Shown here: positions 19,272 to 30,971 of the stretch, piece after piece
How positions within the stretch are numbered: the stretch's first letter is position 1
Layout of the letters: each line of letters opens with the position of its first letter
NCBI GenBank assembly: GCA_977020255.1
Contig: CDROCS010003321.1
Coordinates: 62,001-126,000 of the forward strand
Source of the DNA: Obrimoposthia wandeli
Lineage: Eukaryota
Direction: 5' to 3'
DNA: 64,000 nt
Position numbers and translations under genes: made by a program
Notes under the pieces: generated by a model
Databases searched by the model: none
What the model was told of the DNA's origin: nothing
The model's input: the letters and a program-made list of their open reading frames with translations, nothing else

Positions 19272-20135
19272 TTACTCAATATAAACCATTACTGTATCGA
19301 TAATACGCGTAAAACCACCCACCTTTACATCACTAATAGCTGAGCCATTTGATGTTATAGATGCCTCAATAATTGATGCACAGCCCATAGCCCTGCCTTG
19401 CTCAAACACATATTCACTGCCAAGAGATAAATGTTCGCTAAGATAACATGCTAATGCGCCATTAGAGCTACCTGTCGCTGACTCTTCAGTAATACCAAAT
19501 AACGGTGCGAAATTACGACAACTTGCCGTTAATGTGCTTTCTTGATTACATAATTCAAACACATGAAAACCAACAATTTTATTTTTTTTACAGAATTCAG
19601 AAATAGCTTTATCTGCTGGCTGTATTGAATCGAGACAACCGTGAGGCACAGCAATAATGGCATCCGCTAATCCTGTTGAAATAACTTGGATAGGCAATGT
19701 GGTGCTTGCTAATACATCACATTCAATACCGATAAGCTGAGCAATTTCTTGGTAAGAAAAGCTAGCTAATTTTTGCGGTAATTTTTGCTCCATAATAACC
19801 TTACCACTCGCTTTGACATCGACTACTAACGTTCCAGCTTTAGTGCGTTGCAAATAAGCGCCTGCAGTTAGCATACCCTTTTCATACATTGTAGAAAAAG
19901 CTGCCAGTGTTGCATGCCCACAAAAATCAACTTCGTCAGTTATCGTAAAAAAGGAGACTTCATAGTCAGCGGCATCGTCACAGGAGACAAAAGCGGTTTC
20001 TGAAAACCCAACCGCTTGTGCAATCTTTAATTTTTGATCATTAGATAAGTGATCCGCATTAAGTACTACTCCGGCCGGATTACCACCCGCTCCATTTTTA
20101 GTAAACGAGTTGACCAATGTTACCTCAATATCCAT
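19272..20135 (-). CDS. PhzF family isomerase/epimerase
   Basis: GGNPAG, SETAF, EVDFCGHATLA, EESATGSSNG, EQG. Confidence 0.92.
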   Translation of the reverse strand: MDIEVTLVNSFTKNGAGGNPAGVVLNADHLSNDQKLKIAQAVGFSETAFVSCDDAADYEVSFFTITDEVDFCGHATLAAFSTMYEKGMLTAGAYLQRTKAGTLVVDVKASGKVIMEQKLPQKLASFSYQEIAQLIGIECDVLASTTLPIQVISTGLADAIIAVPHGCLDSIQPADKAISEFCKKNKIVGFHVFELCNQESTLTASCRNFAPLFGITEESATGSSNGALACYLSEHLSLGSEYVFEQGRAMGCASIIEASITSNGSAISDVKVGGFTRIIDTVMVYIE

Positions 20136-23648: not shown

Positions 23649-24767
23649 TTAAACCTTAATTTCTTGCTGTGTTGCACAGTGGATACTCCCTCCGCCTGAA
23701 GCAATTGCATCGATTGCTATTTGCTCTATCGCTCTGTTGGGGAAAGCTTTTTCTAACGTTTTTCTTGCTCTCTCATCTGTTGTTTTATCACCGAATTTTT
23801 GTGCGATAATGGCGCTATTACAAACGTAATAACCGATATAACCCGCTGCGAAATCACTACTATCATAGGTTTCGTTAATTTCATCAGGCGTATCCACAAT
23901 TATTACTTTTAGCTTGTTACCAAAAGCATCTTCACTCTTATTTAATACTTCAATATTTTTTCTAGTTATCTGGTAGTCAAATGAGTCACGATAATTATCT
24001 CTGCTTACTATTACCTCTCCAGGCTTGGTAAAGCGCGCATAAAAATCAGTATGACCATCAGTAATATCTTTACCTTTAATACCTTCTAACCAAATTATTT
24101 TTTTTAATCCAAGTAATTGTTTCAGCTCAAACTCAATCGCTTTTTGGCTTATGCCAGGGTTACGATTACCGTTAATGATACAGCTCTTAGTCATGATCGC
24201 CGTTCCTGCACCATCTACCTCAAAGCAGCCGCCTTCAAGGGTTAGTTTTGATCTTTTAGTGATAGAGTTTGTAGAATTACTTATAAAGCTGGCTACTTGG
24301 GAATCTAGCTCATGCTCTTGTTTTCCTCCCCAACCGTTAAAGTTAAAGTCAATTGCGTATTTTTTACCATCAGAGCCTTTAACAAAGGTAGGTCCGGTAT
24401 CTCTTAACCACAAATCATCTGTTTCAAATTGAATCAAATCTAGCGGATAATTGTTAGCACTAAGGTCTCCTAATAGTGAAAGGGCTTCATTATAATCATC
24501 GGATGACACCAGCATTGACACAGGCTCGTATTTGGCTATAGTTTTAGCAATTAATACTAAATTTCTTTTCACTTCAGGTATTTGCCGTTTAGACCATATA
24601 TAGTCATTTGCGACAAAAGACATCCAAGTTCTTTCATGAATTCCACTTTCATCTGGCATTGTGAGAGATATGGCTGAGGAGCTATTTTGGGCAAGAACGC
24701 TGTCAGCAAGAACAAAACCTGCCGATAAATAACCCATACTTTTTGTAAAATATCTTCGAGTAATCAT
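23649..24767 (-). CDS. Agmatine/peptidylarginine deiminase family protein with Tat signal
   Basis: DLWLRDTGP, LEGG, TDGHTD, GGGSIHCATQQ; N-terminal TRRYF twin-arginine motif. Confidence 0.9.
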   Translation of the reverse strand: MITRRYFTKSMGYLSAGFVLADSVLAQNSSSAISLTMPDESGIHERTWMSFVANDYIWSKRQIPEVKRNLVLIAKTIAKYEPVSMLVSSDDYNEALSLLGDLSANNYPLDLIQFETDDLWLRDTGPTFVKGSDGKKYAIDFNFNGWGGKQEHELDSQVASFISNSTNSITKRSKLTLEGGCFEVDGAGTAIMTKSCIINGNRNPGISQKAIEFELKQLLGLKKIIWLEGIKGKDITDGHTDFYARFTKPGEVIVSRDNYRDSFDYQITRKNIEVLNKSEDAFGNKLKVIIVDTPDEINETYDSSDFAAGYIGYYVCNSAIIAQKFGDKTTDERARKTLEKAFPNRAIEQIAIDAIASGGGSIHCATQQEIKV

Positions 24768-24784
24768 CTTAATACCTCTATGTG

Positions 24785-24824
24785 CTCATAACTTTTTGGT
24801 ATGCCACGTTGGTCGCGTTATGTG
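24785..24824 (-). repeat. Collapsed attC-like junction
   Basis: Minus strand CACATAAC...GTTATGAG inverted core-like pair, followed by GAGG RBS and the deiminase ATG. Confidence 0.35.
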
Positions 24825-24861
24825 AGCTTCGCTATGAGATGAATTGCTTCATTTGATAAGT

Positions 24862-25323
24862 TTAAACCACTAAATATTTCAGCTTAGCTAACATTCTATT
24901 TTGCGCTGCGCTGTAAACTTCTCCAACGGGTATTGCGCCTTTTTTTAGATAGAAGTCCTGCGCATCGGGATCAGATACTATATAAAATTCAGCTATGGCC
25001 AAAAAATCACACTCCTTTAGTATCTGTTTAAATGCAAGGCTGCCGATACCTTTACCTATTGCTTCAGGTAGTAACCAAAGGTGATCCAACATATTCTCTT
25101 CGCCTTTAGTTATTGCAATAGTTATCGCAAAAAAGCCGATGACCTTCGCATTTTTAGTCATTAACTTAACGGTATTGTCGCGAATGTATTTACTTTCAAA
25201 TTGCAGCTTTGAGCGCCATACTTCTAATTGTTCTCGCGAATAACCCCAGTGCCCTTTCGATTCGATCAATATATCTCGAAGTAGCTGATGTTGATCTGAT
25301 GTTGCATCTGCAAATTCAACCAA
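24862..25323 (-). CDS. GNAT family N-acetyltransferase
   Basis: LDHLWLLPEAIGKGIG, SDPDAQDFYLKKGA. Confidence 0.88.
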   Translation of the reverse strand: MVEFADATSDQHQLLRDILIESKGHWGYSREQLEVWRSKLQFESKYIRDNTVKLMTKNAKVIGFFAITIAITKGEENMLDHLWLLPEAIGKGIGSLAFKQILKECDFLAIAEFYIVSDPDAQDFYLKKGAIPVGEVYSAAQNRMLAKLKYLVV

Positions 25324-25474
25324 TTACTTCACCTTTCATCCTTTCATCTTTGACCCAGGCATGAGTCGTCTGTAATAAAACGCGAACCCCATGATTAAAA
25401 TTGTATTAAATAACTCTTACACTGTCGAATAATACGACTATCACGCTTTTGTTATCAGACTTCTTTATCGGTGT

Positions 25475-25921
25475 TTATAATGAAGGGCGAGAGATATAGG
25501 CTGTTTTTTCATCTGAGGTAAAACCGCATGCTCGATAAAATGCATGTGTCGACTCTTTGTTTGAACCTGTTAGCAACATTACTTTATAACACTGTACTGA
25601 CCAACAGTAATTAAGTGCATGGGCCATAGTTTTTCGAGCATATCCTTTACCTTGCTCAGCAGTTTGGGTGATAACGTTTTCAATGACAGCATAAGGCGCA
25701 GCCGCTCTGGTCAGATTTGCTATAATATTAACGTAACAACTTGATAGCAGCTGCCCATCACTTTTTTCTAAGACAAATATAGTGAGCCAATCACTTTCTA
25801 TAATCTGTTTAAACACAGCCTTACCGATTTTATCCTCAAGTATAGGGTCTTCTGGCTGAAGTTGCCTATAGAGGATCATAATCGAATCAAAATCTTCATA
25901 AGCCGCTGCTCGTACTATCAT
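25475..25921 (-). CDS. GNAT family N-acetyltransferase
   Basis: IENVITQTAEQGKGYA, CYKVMLLTG, FYRACGF. Confidence 0.9.
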   Translation of the reverse strand: MIVRAAAYEDFDSIMILYRQLQPEDPILEDKIGKAVFKQIIESDWLTIFVLEKSDGQLLSSCYVNIIANLTRAAAPYAVIENVITQTAEQGKGYARKTMAHALNYCWSVQCYKVMLLTGSNKESTHAFYRACGFTSDEKTAYISRPSL

Positions 25922-27060: not shown

Positions 27061-27516
27061 TTATTTGTTAGAGGGCTGCTGTATGTACGTATAAGTACCA
27101 TCATCGCCATTGATCAATATTTCGAACGAAAATTCACTTCCATCATGACCATTTGTCGCGCTCGCCTGCACTTTTACTGTGTTTATTTTTACTTGTTTAC
27201 AGCTTAGGCCATCGAGTTCTATTTCAGCATGATCATTATTTATTTCAGAAAACGAAAAGCCTACTACAGTGTTATATTGCGTTTGCTCAAGGTTAATAGC
27301 AACCATATCAACGAACAACATATCTTGCCCCCCATAGTACAGTTGAAAAACCCTAAACTCGCCACTTTGCTCCTTCTTTCTCCATTGACCACATTTTGTG
27401 AGATGCTCAATCGAGCCAAACAAGCTCGACTTTGCTTCCTCATAAGAGACAACTCTACCTAGAGCATGAGTAACGCTTGAAATAAGTAACAATGAGATGG
27501 CAAAGAATATTTTCAT
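27061..27516 (-). CDS. Secreted hypothetical protein
   Basis: Signal peptide MKIFFAISLLLISSVTHA; 151 aa; two Cys. Confidence 0.7.
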   Translation of the reverse strand: MKIFFAISLLLISSVTHALGRVVSYEEAKSSLFGSIEHLTKCGQWRKKEQSGEFRVFQLYYGGQDMLFVDMVAINLEQTQYNTVVGFSFSEINNDHAEIELDGLSCKQVKINTVKVQASATNGHDGSEFSFEILINGDDGTYTYIQQPSNK

Positions 27517-27746
27517 GTGAGCTCTTATATGTAATTAATATGTGCAGCTTACTGAGTCAGGTTGGTTTTGTCTCGTTAAAACAATGGCCACTTATCTTGA
27601 TAAATAAACGGTCAGTACAAGCTAAGAATACCTGTTAGAACTATTTCAATAGTTTTGAATGCTGACTTTGGAGATGTAGTACTTTGACTTATAAGCACTC
27701 TATTTAAAGTAGAGGGTGCAACATCTAATTGCTTTGCTACTGTAGA

Positions 27747-27911
27747 AGTAACACAAATGCATTACTACTATAACTAGTAACGTAAATAGGTAGCTATCAT
27801 AAGCAATAACACAAACGCGTCCTCACTGGAAAAGTAACTTAAATACGTTACTACTAGAAAAAGTAACATAAACACGTTACTATAAAAGTTAAGTAATATT
27901 GAATCACTACA
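27747..27911 (+). repeat. Array of six ~29-bp units, each an AGTAAC-N8-GTTACT palindrome (putative operator array)
   Basis: Unit starts 27747, 27776, 27805, 27833, 27862, 27892; units 4 and 5 are perfect palindromes; ends about 20 nt before the SatD start. Confidence 0.8.
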
Positions 27912-27932: not shown

Positions 27933-28595
27933 ATGCAAGAACTAGAGCAAGAAGAACCAAACAAGTCAATAGCAGTACTAAGTGGAGATATTATTGGTTC
28001 TACCGAGCTACCACACACTATGTATGAAGATTTACTATATACATTGCATAATCAACTAGCCTTTATTGAAACTCTTAACCCAAACAACAAGTTTGAGATA
28101 AGTAGAGGCGATTCATTTCAAGTTCTAATACAAGATGCCGAAAATGCAGCCAAATATGCACTACTCCTTAGAACGAGTCTAAGAAGTAGAAATAACAATT
28201 ATGACTGCAGAATAAGTATTGCTATAGGCCATGATGTATCCATCCGGCACACAATAGCTAGTTCAACTGGTGATGCTTTTACAATGTCAGGTCGGGCATT
28301 AGATAACATGACTTCTGACACATTGAAAGTCACGACAGTACTACAACCGTTCAATGAGCATTTTGGTCTACTTACCAAATACTTAGATCAACACATATCA
28401 CAGATGACAGAGAGACAATGTGCAATTACATATATTATATTAAAAAATCAGCAGTCACTCACTCAGAAAGAAATCGCTGAGTTGTTGGGGGTAAATAGAG
28501 TGTCAGTAAATCGCTCTATCAACACCGCAAATTTAAACTTTGTAGCTGAATATACCCAGTTATTTTCACAAAAAGTAAGAGAGTTTTTCCTTTGA
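27933..28595 (+). CDS. SatD family protein: class III nucleotide-cyclase-like domain plus C-terminal HTH
   Basis: AVLSGDIIGS, RGDSFQ, RISIAIG, TGDAFTMSGRALD; HTH TQKEIAELLGVNRVSVNRSI. Confidence 0.82.
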   Translation: MQELEQEEPNKSIAVLSGDIIGSTELPHTMYEDLLYTLHNQLAFIETLNPNNKFEISRGDSFQVLIQDAENAAKYALLLRTSLRSRNNNYDCRISIAIGHDVSIRHTIASSTGDAFTMSGRALDNMTSDTLKVTTVLQPFNEHFGLLTKYLDQHISQMTERQCAITYIILKNQQSLTQKEIAELLGVNRVSVNRSINTANLNFVAEYTQLFSQKVREFFL

Positions 28596-29323
28596 GTACC
28601 TTCCTTGTATTATTTTTATCTCTAGTTATATTGCACCTCCTGGTTGACTTTTATTTCCAGCCTACAGCGTGGGTTCAAGATAAAAACGATAGGCATGCAA
28701 AGTCTTCTAAGTTGCATTTACACGCAGCAATACAGGCTATTGTTTCATGTATTCCCATTTTATATATCACTACAGATTGGCAATCAGTCGTTTGTGTGTT
28801 GCTCATAATTGGGTCTTCGCACTGGATAATTGATCTTGGGAAAACATATTTGAACAGCCGGCTGCGCTATTTTATTCTTGATCAAATATTACATATCATT
28901 GTTTTAGCCGGAGTCGCTCTACATATATCACAGCTAGAGTGGTCATTTTCTGAACTGATAAGCGTGATTATTACAGAAAACAACCTAGCGATAGCACTCG
29001 CTTATGTTGTTATTTTCAAACCTACGTCTATTTTAATCGGCTCTATTTTAACCAATTACATACCCGAAGAAAGTGAGGAAAACGAAGGCTTAATTTCTGG
29101 GGGAGAAGTTATTGGGTATTTAGAACGAACGCTCATACTGACCTTTACAATCACAGGGCAACTATCGATTATAGGTTTCATATTAGCAGCTAAATCCATA
29201 TTCAGGTTTGGCGAGTTGAACAATTCAAAAAACCATAAACTTACAGAGTATGTACTCTTAGGATCATTGCTATCTGTGACCATTACCTCATTGGTTGGAT
29301 TAGTCATAAAGAATTTTCTTTAG
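28592..29323 (+). CDS. DUF3307 domain membrane protein
   Basis: LHLLVDFYFQ, HAAI, SHWIID, DQILH, IGYLERTL, AKSIFRF, EYVLLGSLLS; TTG start overlapping the SatD stop. Confidence 0.85.
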   Translation: MSTFLVLFLSLVILHLLVDFYFQPTAWVQDKNDRHAKSSKLHLHAAIQAIVSCIPILYITTDWQSVVCVLLIIGSSHWIIDLGKTYLNSRLRYFILDQILHIIVLAGVALHISQLEWSFSELISVIITENNLAIALAYVVIFKPTSILIGSILTNYIPEESEENEGLISGGEVIGYLERTLILTFTITGQLSIIGFILAAKSIFRFGELNNSKNHKLTEYVLLGSLLSVTITSLVGLVIKNFL

Positions 29324-29329
29324 TAAGTG

Positions 29330-29561: not shown

Positions 29562-30971
29562 GTCGCGGTAGGAATGGTCATTACTGCCTCCCCGGCACAG
29601 ATCCGGACGTGCACTACTAACGCATCCGGCTTCTACCTCGGGTATTTGGCGTAAAAACGCTGTTTAGATAAGGATGTACAATCCTAAGTTTAGGTAACCA
29701 ATATCTCATATAATACTTAAATCGCTCCCTCGTCATTCGGTGCTGTTGACTGCGTCGTCGTAAGTTTTTCAACCATAGCTGCTTAACTCCTTCTATAAAT
29801 TGCCTCTGCTTGTGACCATTGTAAGGGACGCCATAATAATTTATGTGCCCTTTCACTACTCGCCTTAGCCAGCGGCACGTCTCCCACGGTTTATCACAAA
29901 GTCGCTTTCGAAGCGCTAACTTTATCCGTTTCAGTTGAGCTAATTGTCTAGTACGTTTCGTCTTTCTCTTTACAATTACTTCACCTGACAATTTCCTGCC
30001 TATATAGTGAGTAAAACCTAGAAAATCAAACGTCCCCGGTTTAGCCCTTGACGGTTTATCTCTACATTGAGCTAGAGAAAATCGACCAAAGCGTATCAGT
30101 TTTTTTCTTAGGATGTATTTTCAAACCAAAACTCAATAGCCTATGAGTCAGACCATACTGGAAATCAAGCGCATCTTGATACGTTTGAAATCCCAGCACA
30201 GCATCATCTGCGTATCTTATGATAGTAACGTTACCACGAGCATATTTTCGTTGCTTATTCAGCAAAAGATCAAAGCTATAATGCAGGTAAATATTGGCCA
30301 ATAGTGGCGATATCACCGCTCCTTGTGGAGTGCCTATTTTTGACTGCTGTCGGTGATTATGCTCATCGACAACTCCCACTTTAATCCATTGCTTAATAAG
30401 TCGAATAATACGCTTATCACCTATTCGGTGTTCGATGAACTTTATGAGCCAGTCATGCTCTACTGTATCGAAGAACTTGCTGATACCCAAATCCAACACC
30501 CAATTTACTTTCCTTTTCATTATCGCTATATGCAATGCATCATGCTGCCCTCTGCCAGGTCGAAAATCATATGAGAAACCAAGAAAACCGGCTTCATATA
30601 TTTGATTGAGCAACCACACTATTGCTTGCTGGACGATTTTATCTTCCAAACATAAAATACTCAGCCCTCGTTCACTGCCGCCTTCTTTTGCGATAAACAT
30701 TTACCTTGCAGGCTTAGGTTTATAGCTTCCTCGCTGAAGCTTTTGGTGTAGTGCTTGGATGTTCTCTTCCAAAGATGACGTATAATCATGCCACGTTACT
30801 CCGTCACACCCAGCTGCCGCCCCACGCTTAAATTGAAGGAAATTCTGGCGAAGTAGATCTACGTTTATATGATGGTAAAGGTTGGTAAACTGTTGCTTCT
30901 TATCTTTCTTTGCGGCATTTCGCACACCCCGCAAGCGAGACATCACATTATCCCAGCTCTGAGTCTGACTG
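29562..30971 (-). mobile_element. Group II intron, 5'-truncated, with frameshifted RT
   Basis: DV GAAGCCGGATGCGTTAGTAGTGCACGTCCGGATC (29633-29600) and DVI ending CTACCGCGAC at 29562; RT fragments upstream. Confidence 0.88.
29633..30971 (-). pseudogene. Group II intron reverse transcriptase/maturase, at least 3 frameshifts
   Basis: Fragments AAAGCDGV, EDKIVQ, GTPQGAVISPLLANIYLH, RYADD, TFDFLGFTH, GHINYYGVP, RRRSQ, ...YAKYPR* in different frames. Confidence 0.9.

Follow-up and report, generated by a model that had tools for sequence, protein, structure and literature searches.

A fixed-pitch palindrome array upstream of a SatD-like regulator gene: a candidate autoregulatory operator

A row of 20-bp palindromes, set at a pitch of about 29 bp, lies just upstream of the gene for a 220-residue protein with a predicted nucleotidyl-cyclase fold and a helix-turn-helix (HTH) domain in the 64-kb stretch of DNA analysed here (the window). 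Such arrays, often built from quite different palindromes, recur upstream of homologous genes, and we think it likely that they act as cooperative autoregulatory operators, probably repressing ones, for the protein encoded next to them. The array would then be the cis-regulatory part of a self-contained module that also comprises the satD-like gene and a gene for a DUF3307 membrane protein. Each 20-bp dyad would bind one dimer of the adjacent protein through its C-terminal HTH domain, and dimers held at a fixed pitch of 29 bp (28 bp in most other lineages) would probably touch, leading to cooperative occupancy. With the gene-proximal units placed on the core promoter, a filled array would most likely shut off transcription of both the regulator and the DUF3307 gene, and a ligand or nucleotide on the N-terminal cyclase-fold domain would presumably set the affinity. 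Binding by the SatD-like protein, cooperativity, repression and modulation by a ligand are all steps that we infer from sequence only.

The array and the genes beside it

Direct reading of the sequence places the palindromes, with the consensus AGTAAC-N8-GTTACT, in a 416-bp intergenic gap between a divergent 151-aa ORF and the 220-aa gene (Table 1). The sequence-only reading had described six units with start-to-start spacings of 29/29/28/29/30, a central AAA kept in five of them and the best matches close to the gene. All of this was confirmed: the AAA is found in units 1-5, and units 4 and 5 are perfect dyads. The strong copies, with 0-2 mismatches, are units 1, 2, 4 and 5; units 3 and 6 are weak. 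Unit 3 is nonetheless still in register, 29 bp past unit 2 and 28 bp ahead of unit 4. Unit 6 appears to be more than noise, since the nearest relatives carry an imperfect dyad at the same 30-bp offset from the last full unit, either AGTAGC-N8-ACTACT or one with a perfect AGTAAC left arm.

Table 1. Features of the module and its surroundings, in window coordinates
Feature	Position	Strand	Description
Deiminase and two acetyltransferase genes	23649-25921	-	Porphyromonas-type peptidyl-arginine/agmatine deiminase (E = 7e-98); two GNAT acetyltransferases
Divergent 151-aa ORF	27061-27516	-	upstream border of the gap that holds the array
Array	27747-27911		row of 20-bp palindromes
Unit 1	27747-27766		AGTAAC-ACAAATGC-ATTACT; 1 mismatch to the dyad consensus
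Unit 2	27776-27795		AGTAAC-GTAAATAG-GTAGCT; 2 mismatches
Unit 3	27805-27824		decayed, 4 mismatches; AATAAC left arm and centre ACAAACGC kept, right arm lost
Unit 4	27833-27852		AGTAAC-TTAAATAC-GTTACT; perfect dyad, 0 mismatches
Unit 5	27862-27881		AGTAAC-ATAAACAC-GTTACT; perfect dyad, 0 mismatches; starts at -71 from the ATG
-10-like hexamers TACTAT/TATAAA	27878-27886	+	overlap the right arm of unit 5 and the next spacer; candidate core promoter
Unit 6	27892-27911		gene-proximal imperfect dyad AGTAAT-N8-ACTACA; 4 mismatches
220-aa regulator gene	27933-28595	+	class III nucleotidyl-cyclase fold, residues ~13-156; HTH, residues ~160-219
DUF3307 membrane protein gene	28592-29323	+	PF11750, E = 6e-27; start overlaps the stop of the regulator gene
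Reverse transcriptase, two ORFs	29617-30700	-	group II intron type; ORF of 212 aa (RVT_1, E = 4e-32; group_II_RT_mat, E = 4e-62) and second ORF of 124 aa (weak match to the maturase C-terminal end)

At two or fewer mismatches, the window contains 8 dyad sites against 2.6 expected from shuffled sequence; 4 of the 8 lie within a 135-bp stretch of the array and the other 4 are scattered. All three sites with no more than one mismatch are in the array. Tandem Repeats Finder did not report the array, which says nothing against it: with spacers and unit centres that differ, the similarity between whole 29-bp units is only about 55%. A repeat search did recover the 29-bp family, and also a super-repeat of 86 bp that reflects the likeness of units 1-2 to units 4-5.

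The 220-aa protein was modelled by AlphaFold2 as a cyclase fold followed by a helical HTH domain (pLDDT 92.7, pTM 0.89), and the best Foldseek matches to the model are class III adenylyl, guanylyl and cUMP cyclases. A profile built from 60 family members matched the adenylyl cyclase Ma1120 over the N-terminal domain (E = 3e-4). The class III cyclase fold dimerises. The HTH region (residues ~160-200) gave weak matches to the Crp, HTH_11, Sigma70_r4 and MarR models, with NRVSVNRS as recognition helix, and some SatD relatives match the Sigma70_r4 or GerE models. The gene had earlier been called satD, a name that is upheld by relatives of the protein and not by the protein itself: homologues at 61-76% identity carry the Pfam SatD domain (PF16264), and 20 of the 60 aligned sequences (the window protein and 59 relatives) match it at E<=1e-3, but the window protein gives no match even at E<=10. 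It appears to be a divergent member of the SatD family.

Since the start of the DUF3307 gene overlaps the stop of the regulator gene, the two are predicted to form one operon. A DUF3307 (SatE-type) gene follows satD in 50 of the 55 homologous loci described below; at the other five, little downstream DNA was available. PADLOC returned only a weak WYL-type HTH match for the module (E = 0.004) and nothing for DUF3307, and makes no case for a known defence system.

The split reverse transcriptase just downstream of the DUF3307 gene is probably a broken intron ORF. The deiminase and acetyltransferase genes upstream are all on the strand opposite to the module. No attC-like repeats were found around the module between positions 20000 and 34000 of the window.

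A period of 28 or 29 bp in homologous loci

A pattern scan of 185,579 species genomes yielded 55 homologous loci. Upstream of homologues in the close gamma-proteobacterial clade, the palindrome of the window is again set at a period of exactly 29 bp, with 9 units in Aeromonas, 3 in each of two Vibrio, 4-6 in Oceanisphaera, 5 in Alteromonas, 10 in Shewanella, 5 in an Alteromonadaceae MAG and 3 in Psychrobium and relatives; a unit logo was built from 78 distinct units. In eight relatives (L001-L003, L056, L059-L062), as in the window, the last full unit has its start at -71 relative to the ATG. Similarity between the window and its relatives begins at the array (27734-27831) and ends at 29310-29328, that is, at or within 13 bases of the DUF3307 stop, with unrelated DNA on either side. 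Thus, the array belongs to a module of three parts that travel together. The arrays are found on large contigs, up to a complete chromosome of 4.3 Mb, in several genera.

Four Vibrio cholerae assemblies (L059-L062) encode an identical protein behind 5, 8, 6 and 7 units; copy number is therefore polymorphic within the species, and the exact number of upstream units is not under tight selection. There the module lies among short minus-strand ORFs (DUF645, glyoxalase) with neighbours that differ from strain to strain, surroundings that read as integron cassette arrays. In Shewanella mangrovi (L006), the ten-unit array, from -300 to -29, is made of two alternating unit types that form a 58-bp super-repeat, and at one junction two units abut without a spacer (a 20-bp step).

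Homologues at 25-35% identity have different palindromes in the same architecture. The period is 28 bp for TGTTAC-N8-GTAACA in Paraglaciecola, TATCTG-N8-CAGATA in Parapedobacter, GACAGG-N8-CCTGTC in Alpha-proteobacteria and Steroidobacteraceae, TGTGAC-N8-GTCACA in Celerinatantimonas and TATAAG-N8-CTTATA in a Bacteroidota MAG, as it is for four repeats in Pseudanabaena; for ATTCGCC-N6-GGCGAAT in Parasegetibacter it is 29 bp. Read from the start of the match, the frame of the homologue of Celerinatantimonas yamalensis (L040) ends after 35 aa, so that this satD looks frameshifted or broken; its TGTGAC-N8-GTCACA pair is still present, at 28 bp.

The sequence-only reading had called for comparison with the upstream regions of homologues, and we applied a uniform test that scores the two best-matching dyad units within 250 nt upstream of each gene, allowing gaps of 6-10 and periods of 22-35, with a cut-off of 19/24 (stretches of N in L034 were kept). 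Comparable arrays turned up at 40 of the 55 loci, in several phyla. Every one of the 40 has a period of either 28 bp (26 loci) or 29 bp (14 loci). Of 198 control windows from other parts of these loci, no more than 6 reached this score, with periods of 22, 24, 25, 28, 31 and 32. By the scans used, 15 of the 55 loci had no array (Bacillota, Bacteroidales, Planctomycetota, Verrucomicrobiota and others). The array is not a product of chance, and it is not private to the genome from which the window comes.

The assembly that holds the window contains five more SatD homologues, at 26-35% identity (contigs C5499, C2963, C372, C3472 and C3343). Three were examined (L064-L066), and the best period was 28 in all: two (L064 and L066) have clear arrays, TTAGCC-N6-GGCTAA (score 24) and CGAATA-N6-TATTCG (score 22), and L065 has a weak 28-bp repeat whose score of 18 is below the cut-off. 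Evidently this 1.35-Gb assembly contains several bacterial genomes, and the window contig looks bacterial.

That the array is a functionless minisatellite produced by slippage seems scarcely credible. Copy number is polymorphic and some arrays contain recent 58-bp duplications, as slippage would predict, but Pseudomonadota, Bacteroidota and Cyanobacteriota all have arrays that agree in period, dyad symmetry and position although their unit sequences are unrelated. Two other kinds of array were considered and rejected. The units are palindromic, their neighbours are a regulator and a DUF3307 gene and the arrays lie on large contigs, none of which speaks for replication iterons; and a CRISPR array would have repeats of 23-50 bp and unique spacers of similar length, whereas these units measure 20 bp and the 8-9 bp between them are conserved too (ACTAGAAAA type).

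Recognition, pitch and promoter

Alignment of the HTH regions across loci indicated that the class of half-site goes with the protein's own recognition helix. GTAAC is found with NRVSVNRS, TGTTAC with KTRSNxTKLL, TATCTG with ISQGRxSERQ and GACAGG with PPVSKQTVTxSL. Each of these four classes is represented at several loci; other helices pair with motifs seen at a single locus. The correspondence had predictive value. We looked for GACAGG-N8-CCTGTC at those loci that have the PPVSKQTVTxSL helix but had shown no array at first, and pairs 28 bp apart were found in L030 and L052; the outcome was weaker in L024, with a GACAAT/GACAGT pair, and in L038, with one clear site only. Moreover, a two-unit pattern (up to 3 mismatches) was run against five whole genomes of 3.7-4.5 Mb: all its matches fell within the satD array, and the reversed control pattern gave 0. 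A single-site search of the 1.35-Gb assembly was uninformative (1849 matches, 5360 for the control).

We infer that the sites are docking sites for the adjacent regulator, through its C-terminal HTH domain. The link between SatD and the DNA is indirect, being drawn from sequence, and the sites might instead belong to a different, unlinked DNA-binding protein such as a global regulator or a nucleoid protein. We regard this as very unlikely: between phyla, motif and SatD recognition helix change together, array and gene turn up jointly in genomic surroundings that are otherwise unrelated, and tandem sites occur nowhere else in the five genomes searched. Conservation, covariation of helix and half-site, exclusivity to the locus and, in the GACAGG clade, overlap with the promoter (see below) argue together for the proposal, made in the sequence-only reading, of an operator array through which the adjacent HTH protein regulates its own gene.

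With a layout of 6 + 8 + 6 + 8 = 28 bp, one half-site follows another every 14 bp, each in the opposite orientation to the last; in the 29-bp clade, the step is 14/15. Except at the ends of an array, it therefore makes no difference whether pairs are taken as inverted or everted, which explains the seemingly swapped arms in Paraglaciecola. The gap within the unit varies (6 or 8 nt) and the period is constant at 28-29 bp, a distance that is probably set by contacts between neighbouring dimers. It corresponds to about 2.7 helical turns, such that successive dimers would be rotated by about a quarter to a third of a turn and three units would span about eight turns. Neighbouring dimers would then not share a face of the helix, so that simple cooperativity along a single face is not the geometry one would first expect. 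The unit centres are A/T tracts in all clades, G+C-rich genomes included, and in either orientation, which would suit DNA-shape readout or bending at the dyad.

The relation of the sites to the promoter is clearest in the GACAGG clade (alpha-proteobacteria and Steroidobacteraceae), where 10 of 12 loci conform to TTGACAGG-N8-CCTGTC-c-TATAnn-n-GACAGG-N8-CCTGTC. The left arm of unit 1 is preceded by TT, which completes a TTGACA -35 hexamer, and TATAnn follows 17 bases on. Unit 1 thus covers the -35 element and the spacer, the -10 element falls in the 8-bp spacer between the units, and unit 2 covers the predicted start. In this clade, the array itself would appear to be the promoter, and a protein bound to the sites would have to compete with RNA polymerase, which argues for negative autoregulation. 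A second GACAGG-N8-CCTGTC pair, also 28 bp apart, is found at the satD/DUF3307 junction, at about +660 to +715 from the satD start (L029, L030, L033 and L050, also L027, L028 and L037). Its position at the end of satD, just ahead of DUF3307, suggests separate control of DUF3307 in this clade and would agree with both genes being controlled directly. In Parapedobacter, a TAnnTTTG box, which we take to be the Bacteroidota -7 element, directly follows the last unit at 2 of 5 loci, with near matches at the others.

In the window's clade, AT always follows the last full unit, giving GTTACTAT, and so a -10-like hexamer: TACTAT, or TATAAA in the window. We take these hexamers as a candidate -10 element; unit 6 would then lie over, or just after, the start of transcription. 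A scan of the region for consensus promoters and terminators called none, and the -35 is weak; for this clade, repression is therefore argued partly by analogy with the GACAGG clade.

The same weak -35 would suit an activator. Possibly, the array bound by SatD is mainly a scaffold or activating platform, on which the cyclase-fold domains form a helical oligomer that switches on transcription or a nucleotide-transferase activity. The period is far more conserved than either the half-site sequence or the gap within the unit, which points to a protein-protein ruler; the alternation of half-sites every 14 bp makes inverted and everted pairs geometrically equivalent; and all 60 aligned sequences keep D19 and D60, the two metal-binding aspartates of the cyclase fold. 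Against this, units placed on the -35, the spacer and the predicted start, as at TTGACA-17-TATAnn promoters, are in the typical position of a repressor, and in the window the last full unit would centre near -18. In addition, the Asn of the cyclase Asn...Arg pair reads as Thr in the aligned window protein. On balance, we consider an activating platform unlikely. The geometry, with half-sites alternating every 14-15 bp and about eight DNA turns for three dimers, would also have room for a molecular ruler along which cyclase-fold/HTH dimers polymerise into a helical nucleoprotein filament. Cyclase-fold domains paired on the DNA template would then switch an activity, nucleotide transfer or signalling, by which the protein communicates with the DUF3307 membrane protein, and the strain-variable number of repeats would set a threshold. 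This, too, we consider unlikely.

Another alternative to an operator is that the repeats act as RNA or as single-strand hairpins, for instance as short RNAs, which the sequence-only reading had offered as its second choice, or as a structured leader. A 6-bp stem is possible in each unit, and the segment 27740-27932 folds somewhat better than shuffled sequence on both strands (z = -2.6 and -2.3). The predicted folds, however, pair different units with one another and do not form unit hairpins. Among 54 distinct units, the broken pairs (10 G.T, 14 A.C and 20 others) had no wobble bias on either strand. Furthermore, there was no Rfam match at gathering score, and no promoter-like or terminator-like sites were called for the individual units. 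The likely promoter is downstream of most of the array, and the central A-tract can have either orientation, which DNA-shape readout would lead one to expect. The short-RNA proposal thus found no support, and we hold a role as RNA or hairpins to be highly improbable.

Known tandem operators and the biology of the module

In kind, the array would be a tandem-operator autoregulatory switch, comparable to lambda OR, the operators of ArgR and MetJ and the omega arrays. The OR1-OR3 region of phage lambda, read by CI and Cro, likewise consists of tandem dyad operators for an HTH dimer. These overlap the promoter of the regulator itself. Neighbouring dimers bind cooperatively there, and three 17-bp sites at 23-24 bp control two divergent promoters. 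The arrays described here differ in having 2-10 sites at a fixed 28-29 bp, a single promoter and, in their putative reader, a cyclase fold in place of a CI-type oligomerisation domain. The ARG boxes of ArgR and the metboxes of MetJ are also tandem palindromic boxes placed on promoters in variable number (2-5 for MetJ) and are bound by ligand-controlled oligomeric repressors. ARG boxes, however, are 18 bp long and, at a step of ~21 bp, share one face of the helix. Metboxes are contiguous 8-mers bound by a ribbon-helix-helix protein. In the present arrays, the units are 2.7 turns apart, and the putative reader is an HTH protein.

Long repeat arrays with variable unit number are also found upstream of promoters in the heptad arrays of the omega repressor (pSM19035) and in ParR/parC, with 7-10 units along which dimers polymerise in a helical path. 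Those units are contiguous, measure 7-11 bp and double as plasmid centromeres, in contrast to the present 20-bp dyads with 8-9-bp spacers, which are chromosomal or cassette-borne with no partition ATPase nearby. The single unit resembles the boxes of LuxR/GerE-type proteins (lux box, tra box), 20-bp palindromes of the 6-N8-6 form read by a dimer of four-helix HTH domains. Unlike these, which are single sites serving mostly in activation, the present sites are arrayed and would be embedded in the promoter. New with respect to the known tandem operators would be a reader that combines a cyclase fold with an HTH domain, a non-integral pitch conserved across phyla, a promoter inside the repeat unit and a unit number of 2-10 that varies between strains. 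Our search of about 8.4 million papers and preprints for SatD, DUF3307 and satCDE found nothing on operators, and only passing mention of the satCDE cluster of S. mutans.

SatD-DUF3307 is a widespread two-gene module without known function, present in Pseudomonadota, Bacteroidota, Cyanobacteriota, Bacillota and other phyla; its neighbours in Vibrio are small, cassette-like genes. With the array, the module gains a testable regulatory logic, namely a defined candidate operator, a rule that relates recognition helix to half-site and a predicted promoter built into the repeat. The pitch, strictly kept at 28-29 bp, asks for an explanation in structural terms. The change in unit number from strain to strain suggests a tunable set-point, and the array may also provide a handle on the signal, in that whatever relieves its occupancy would be the input sensed by the cyclase-fold domain.
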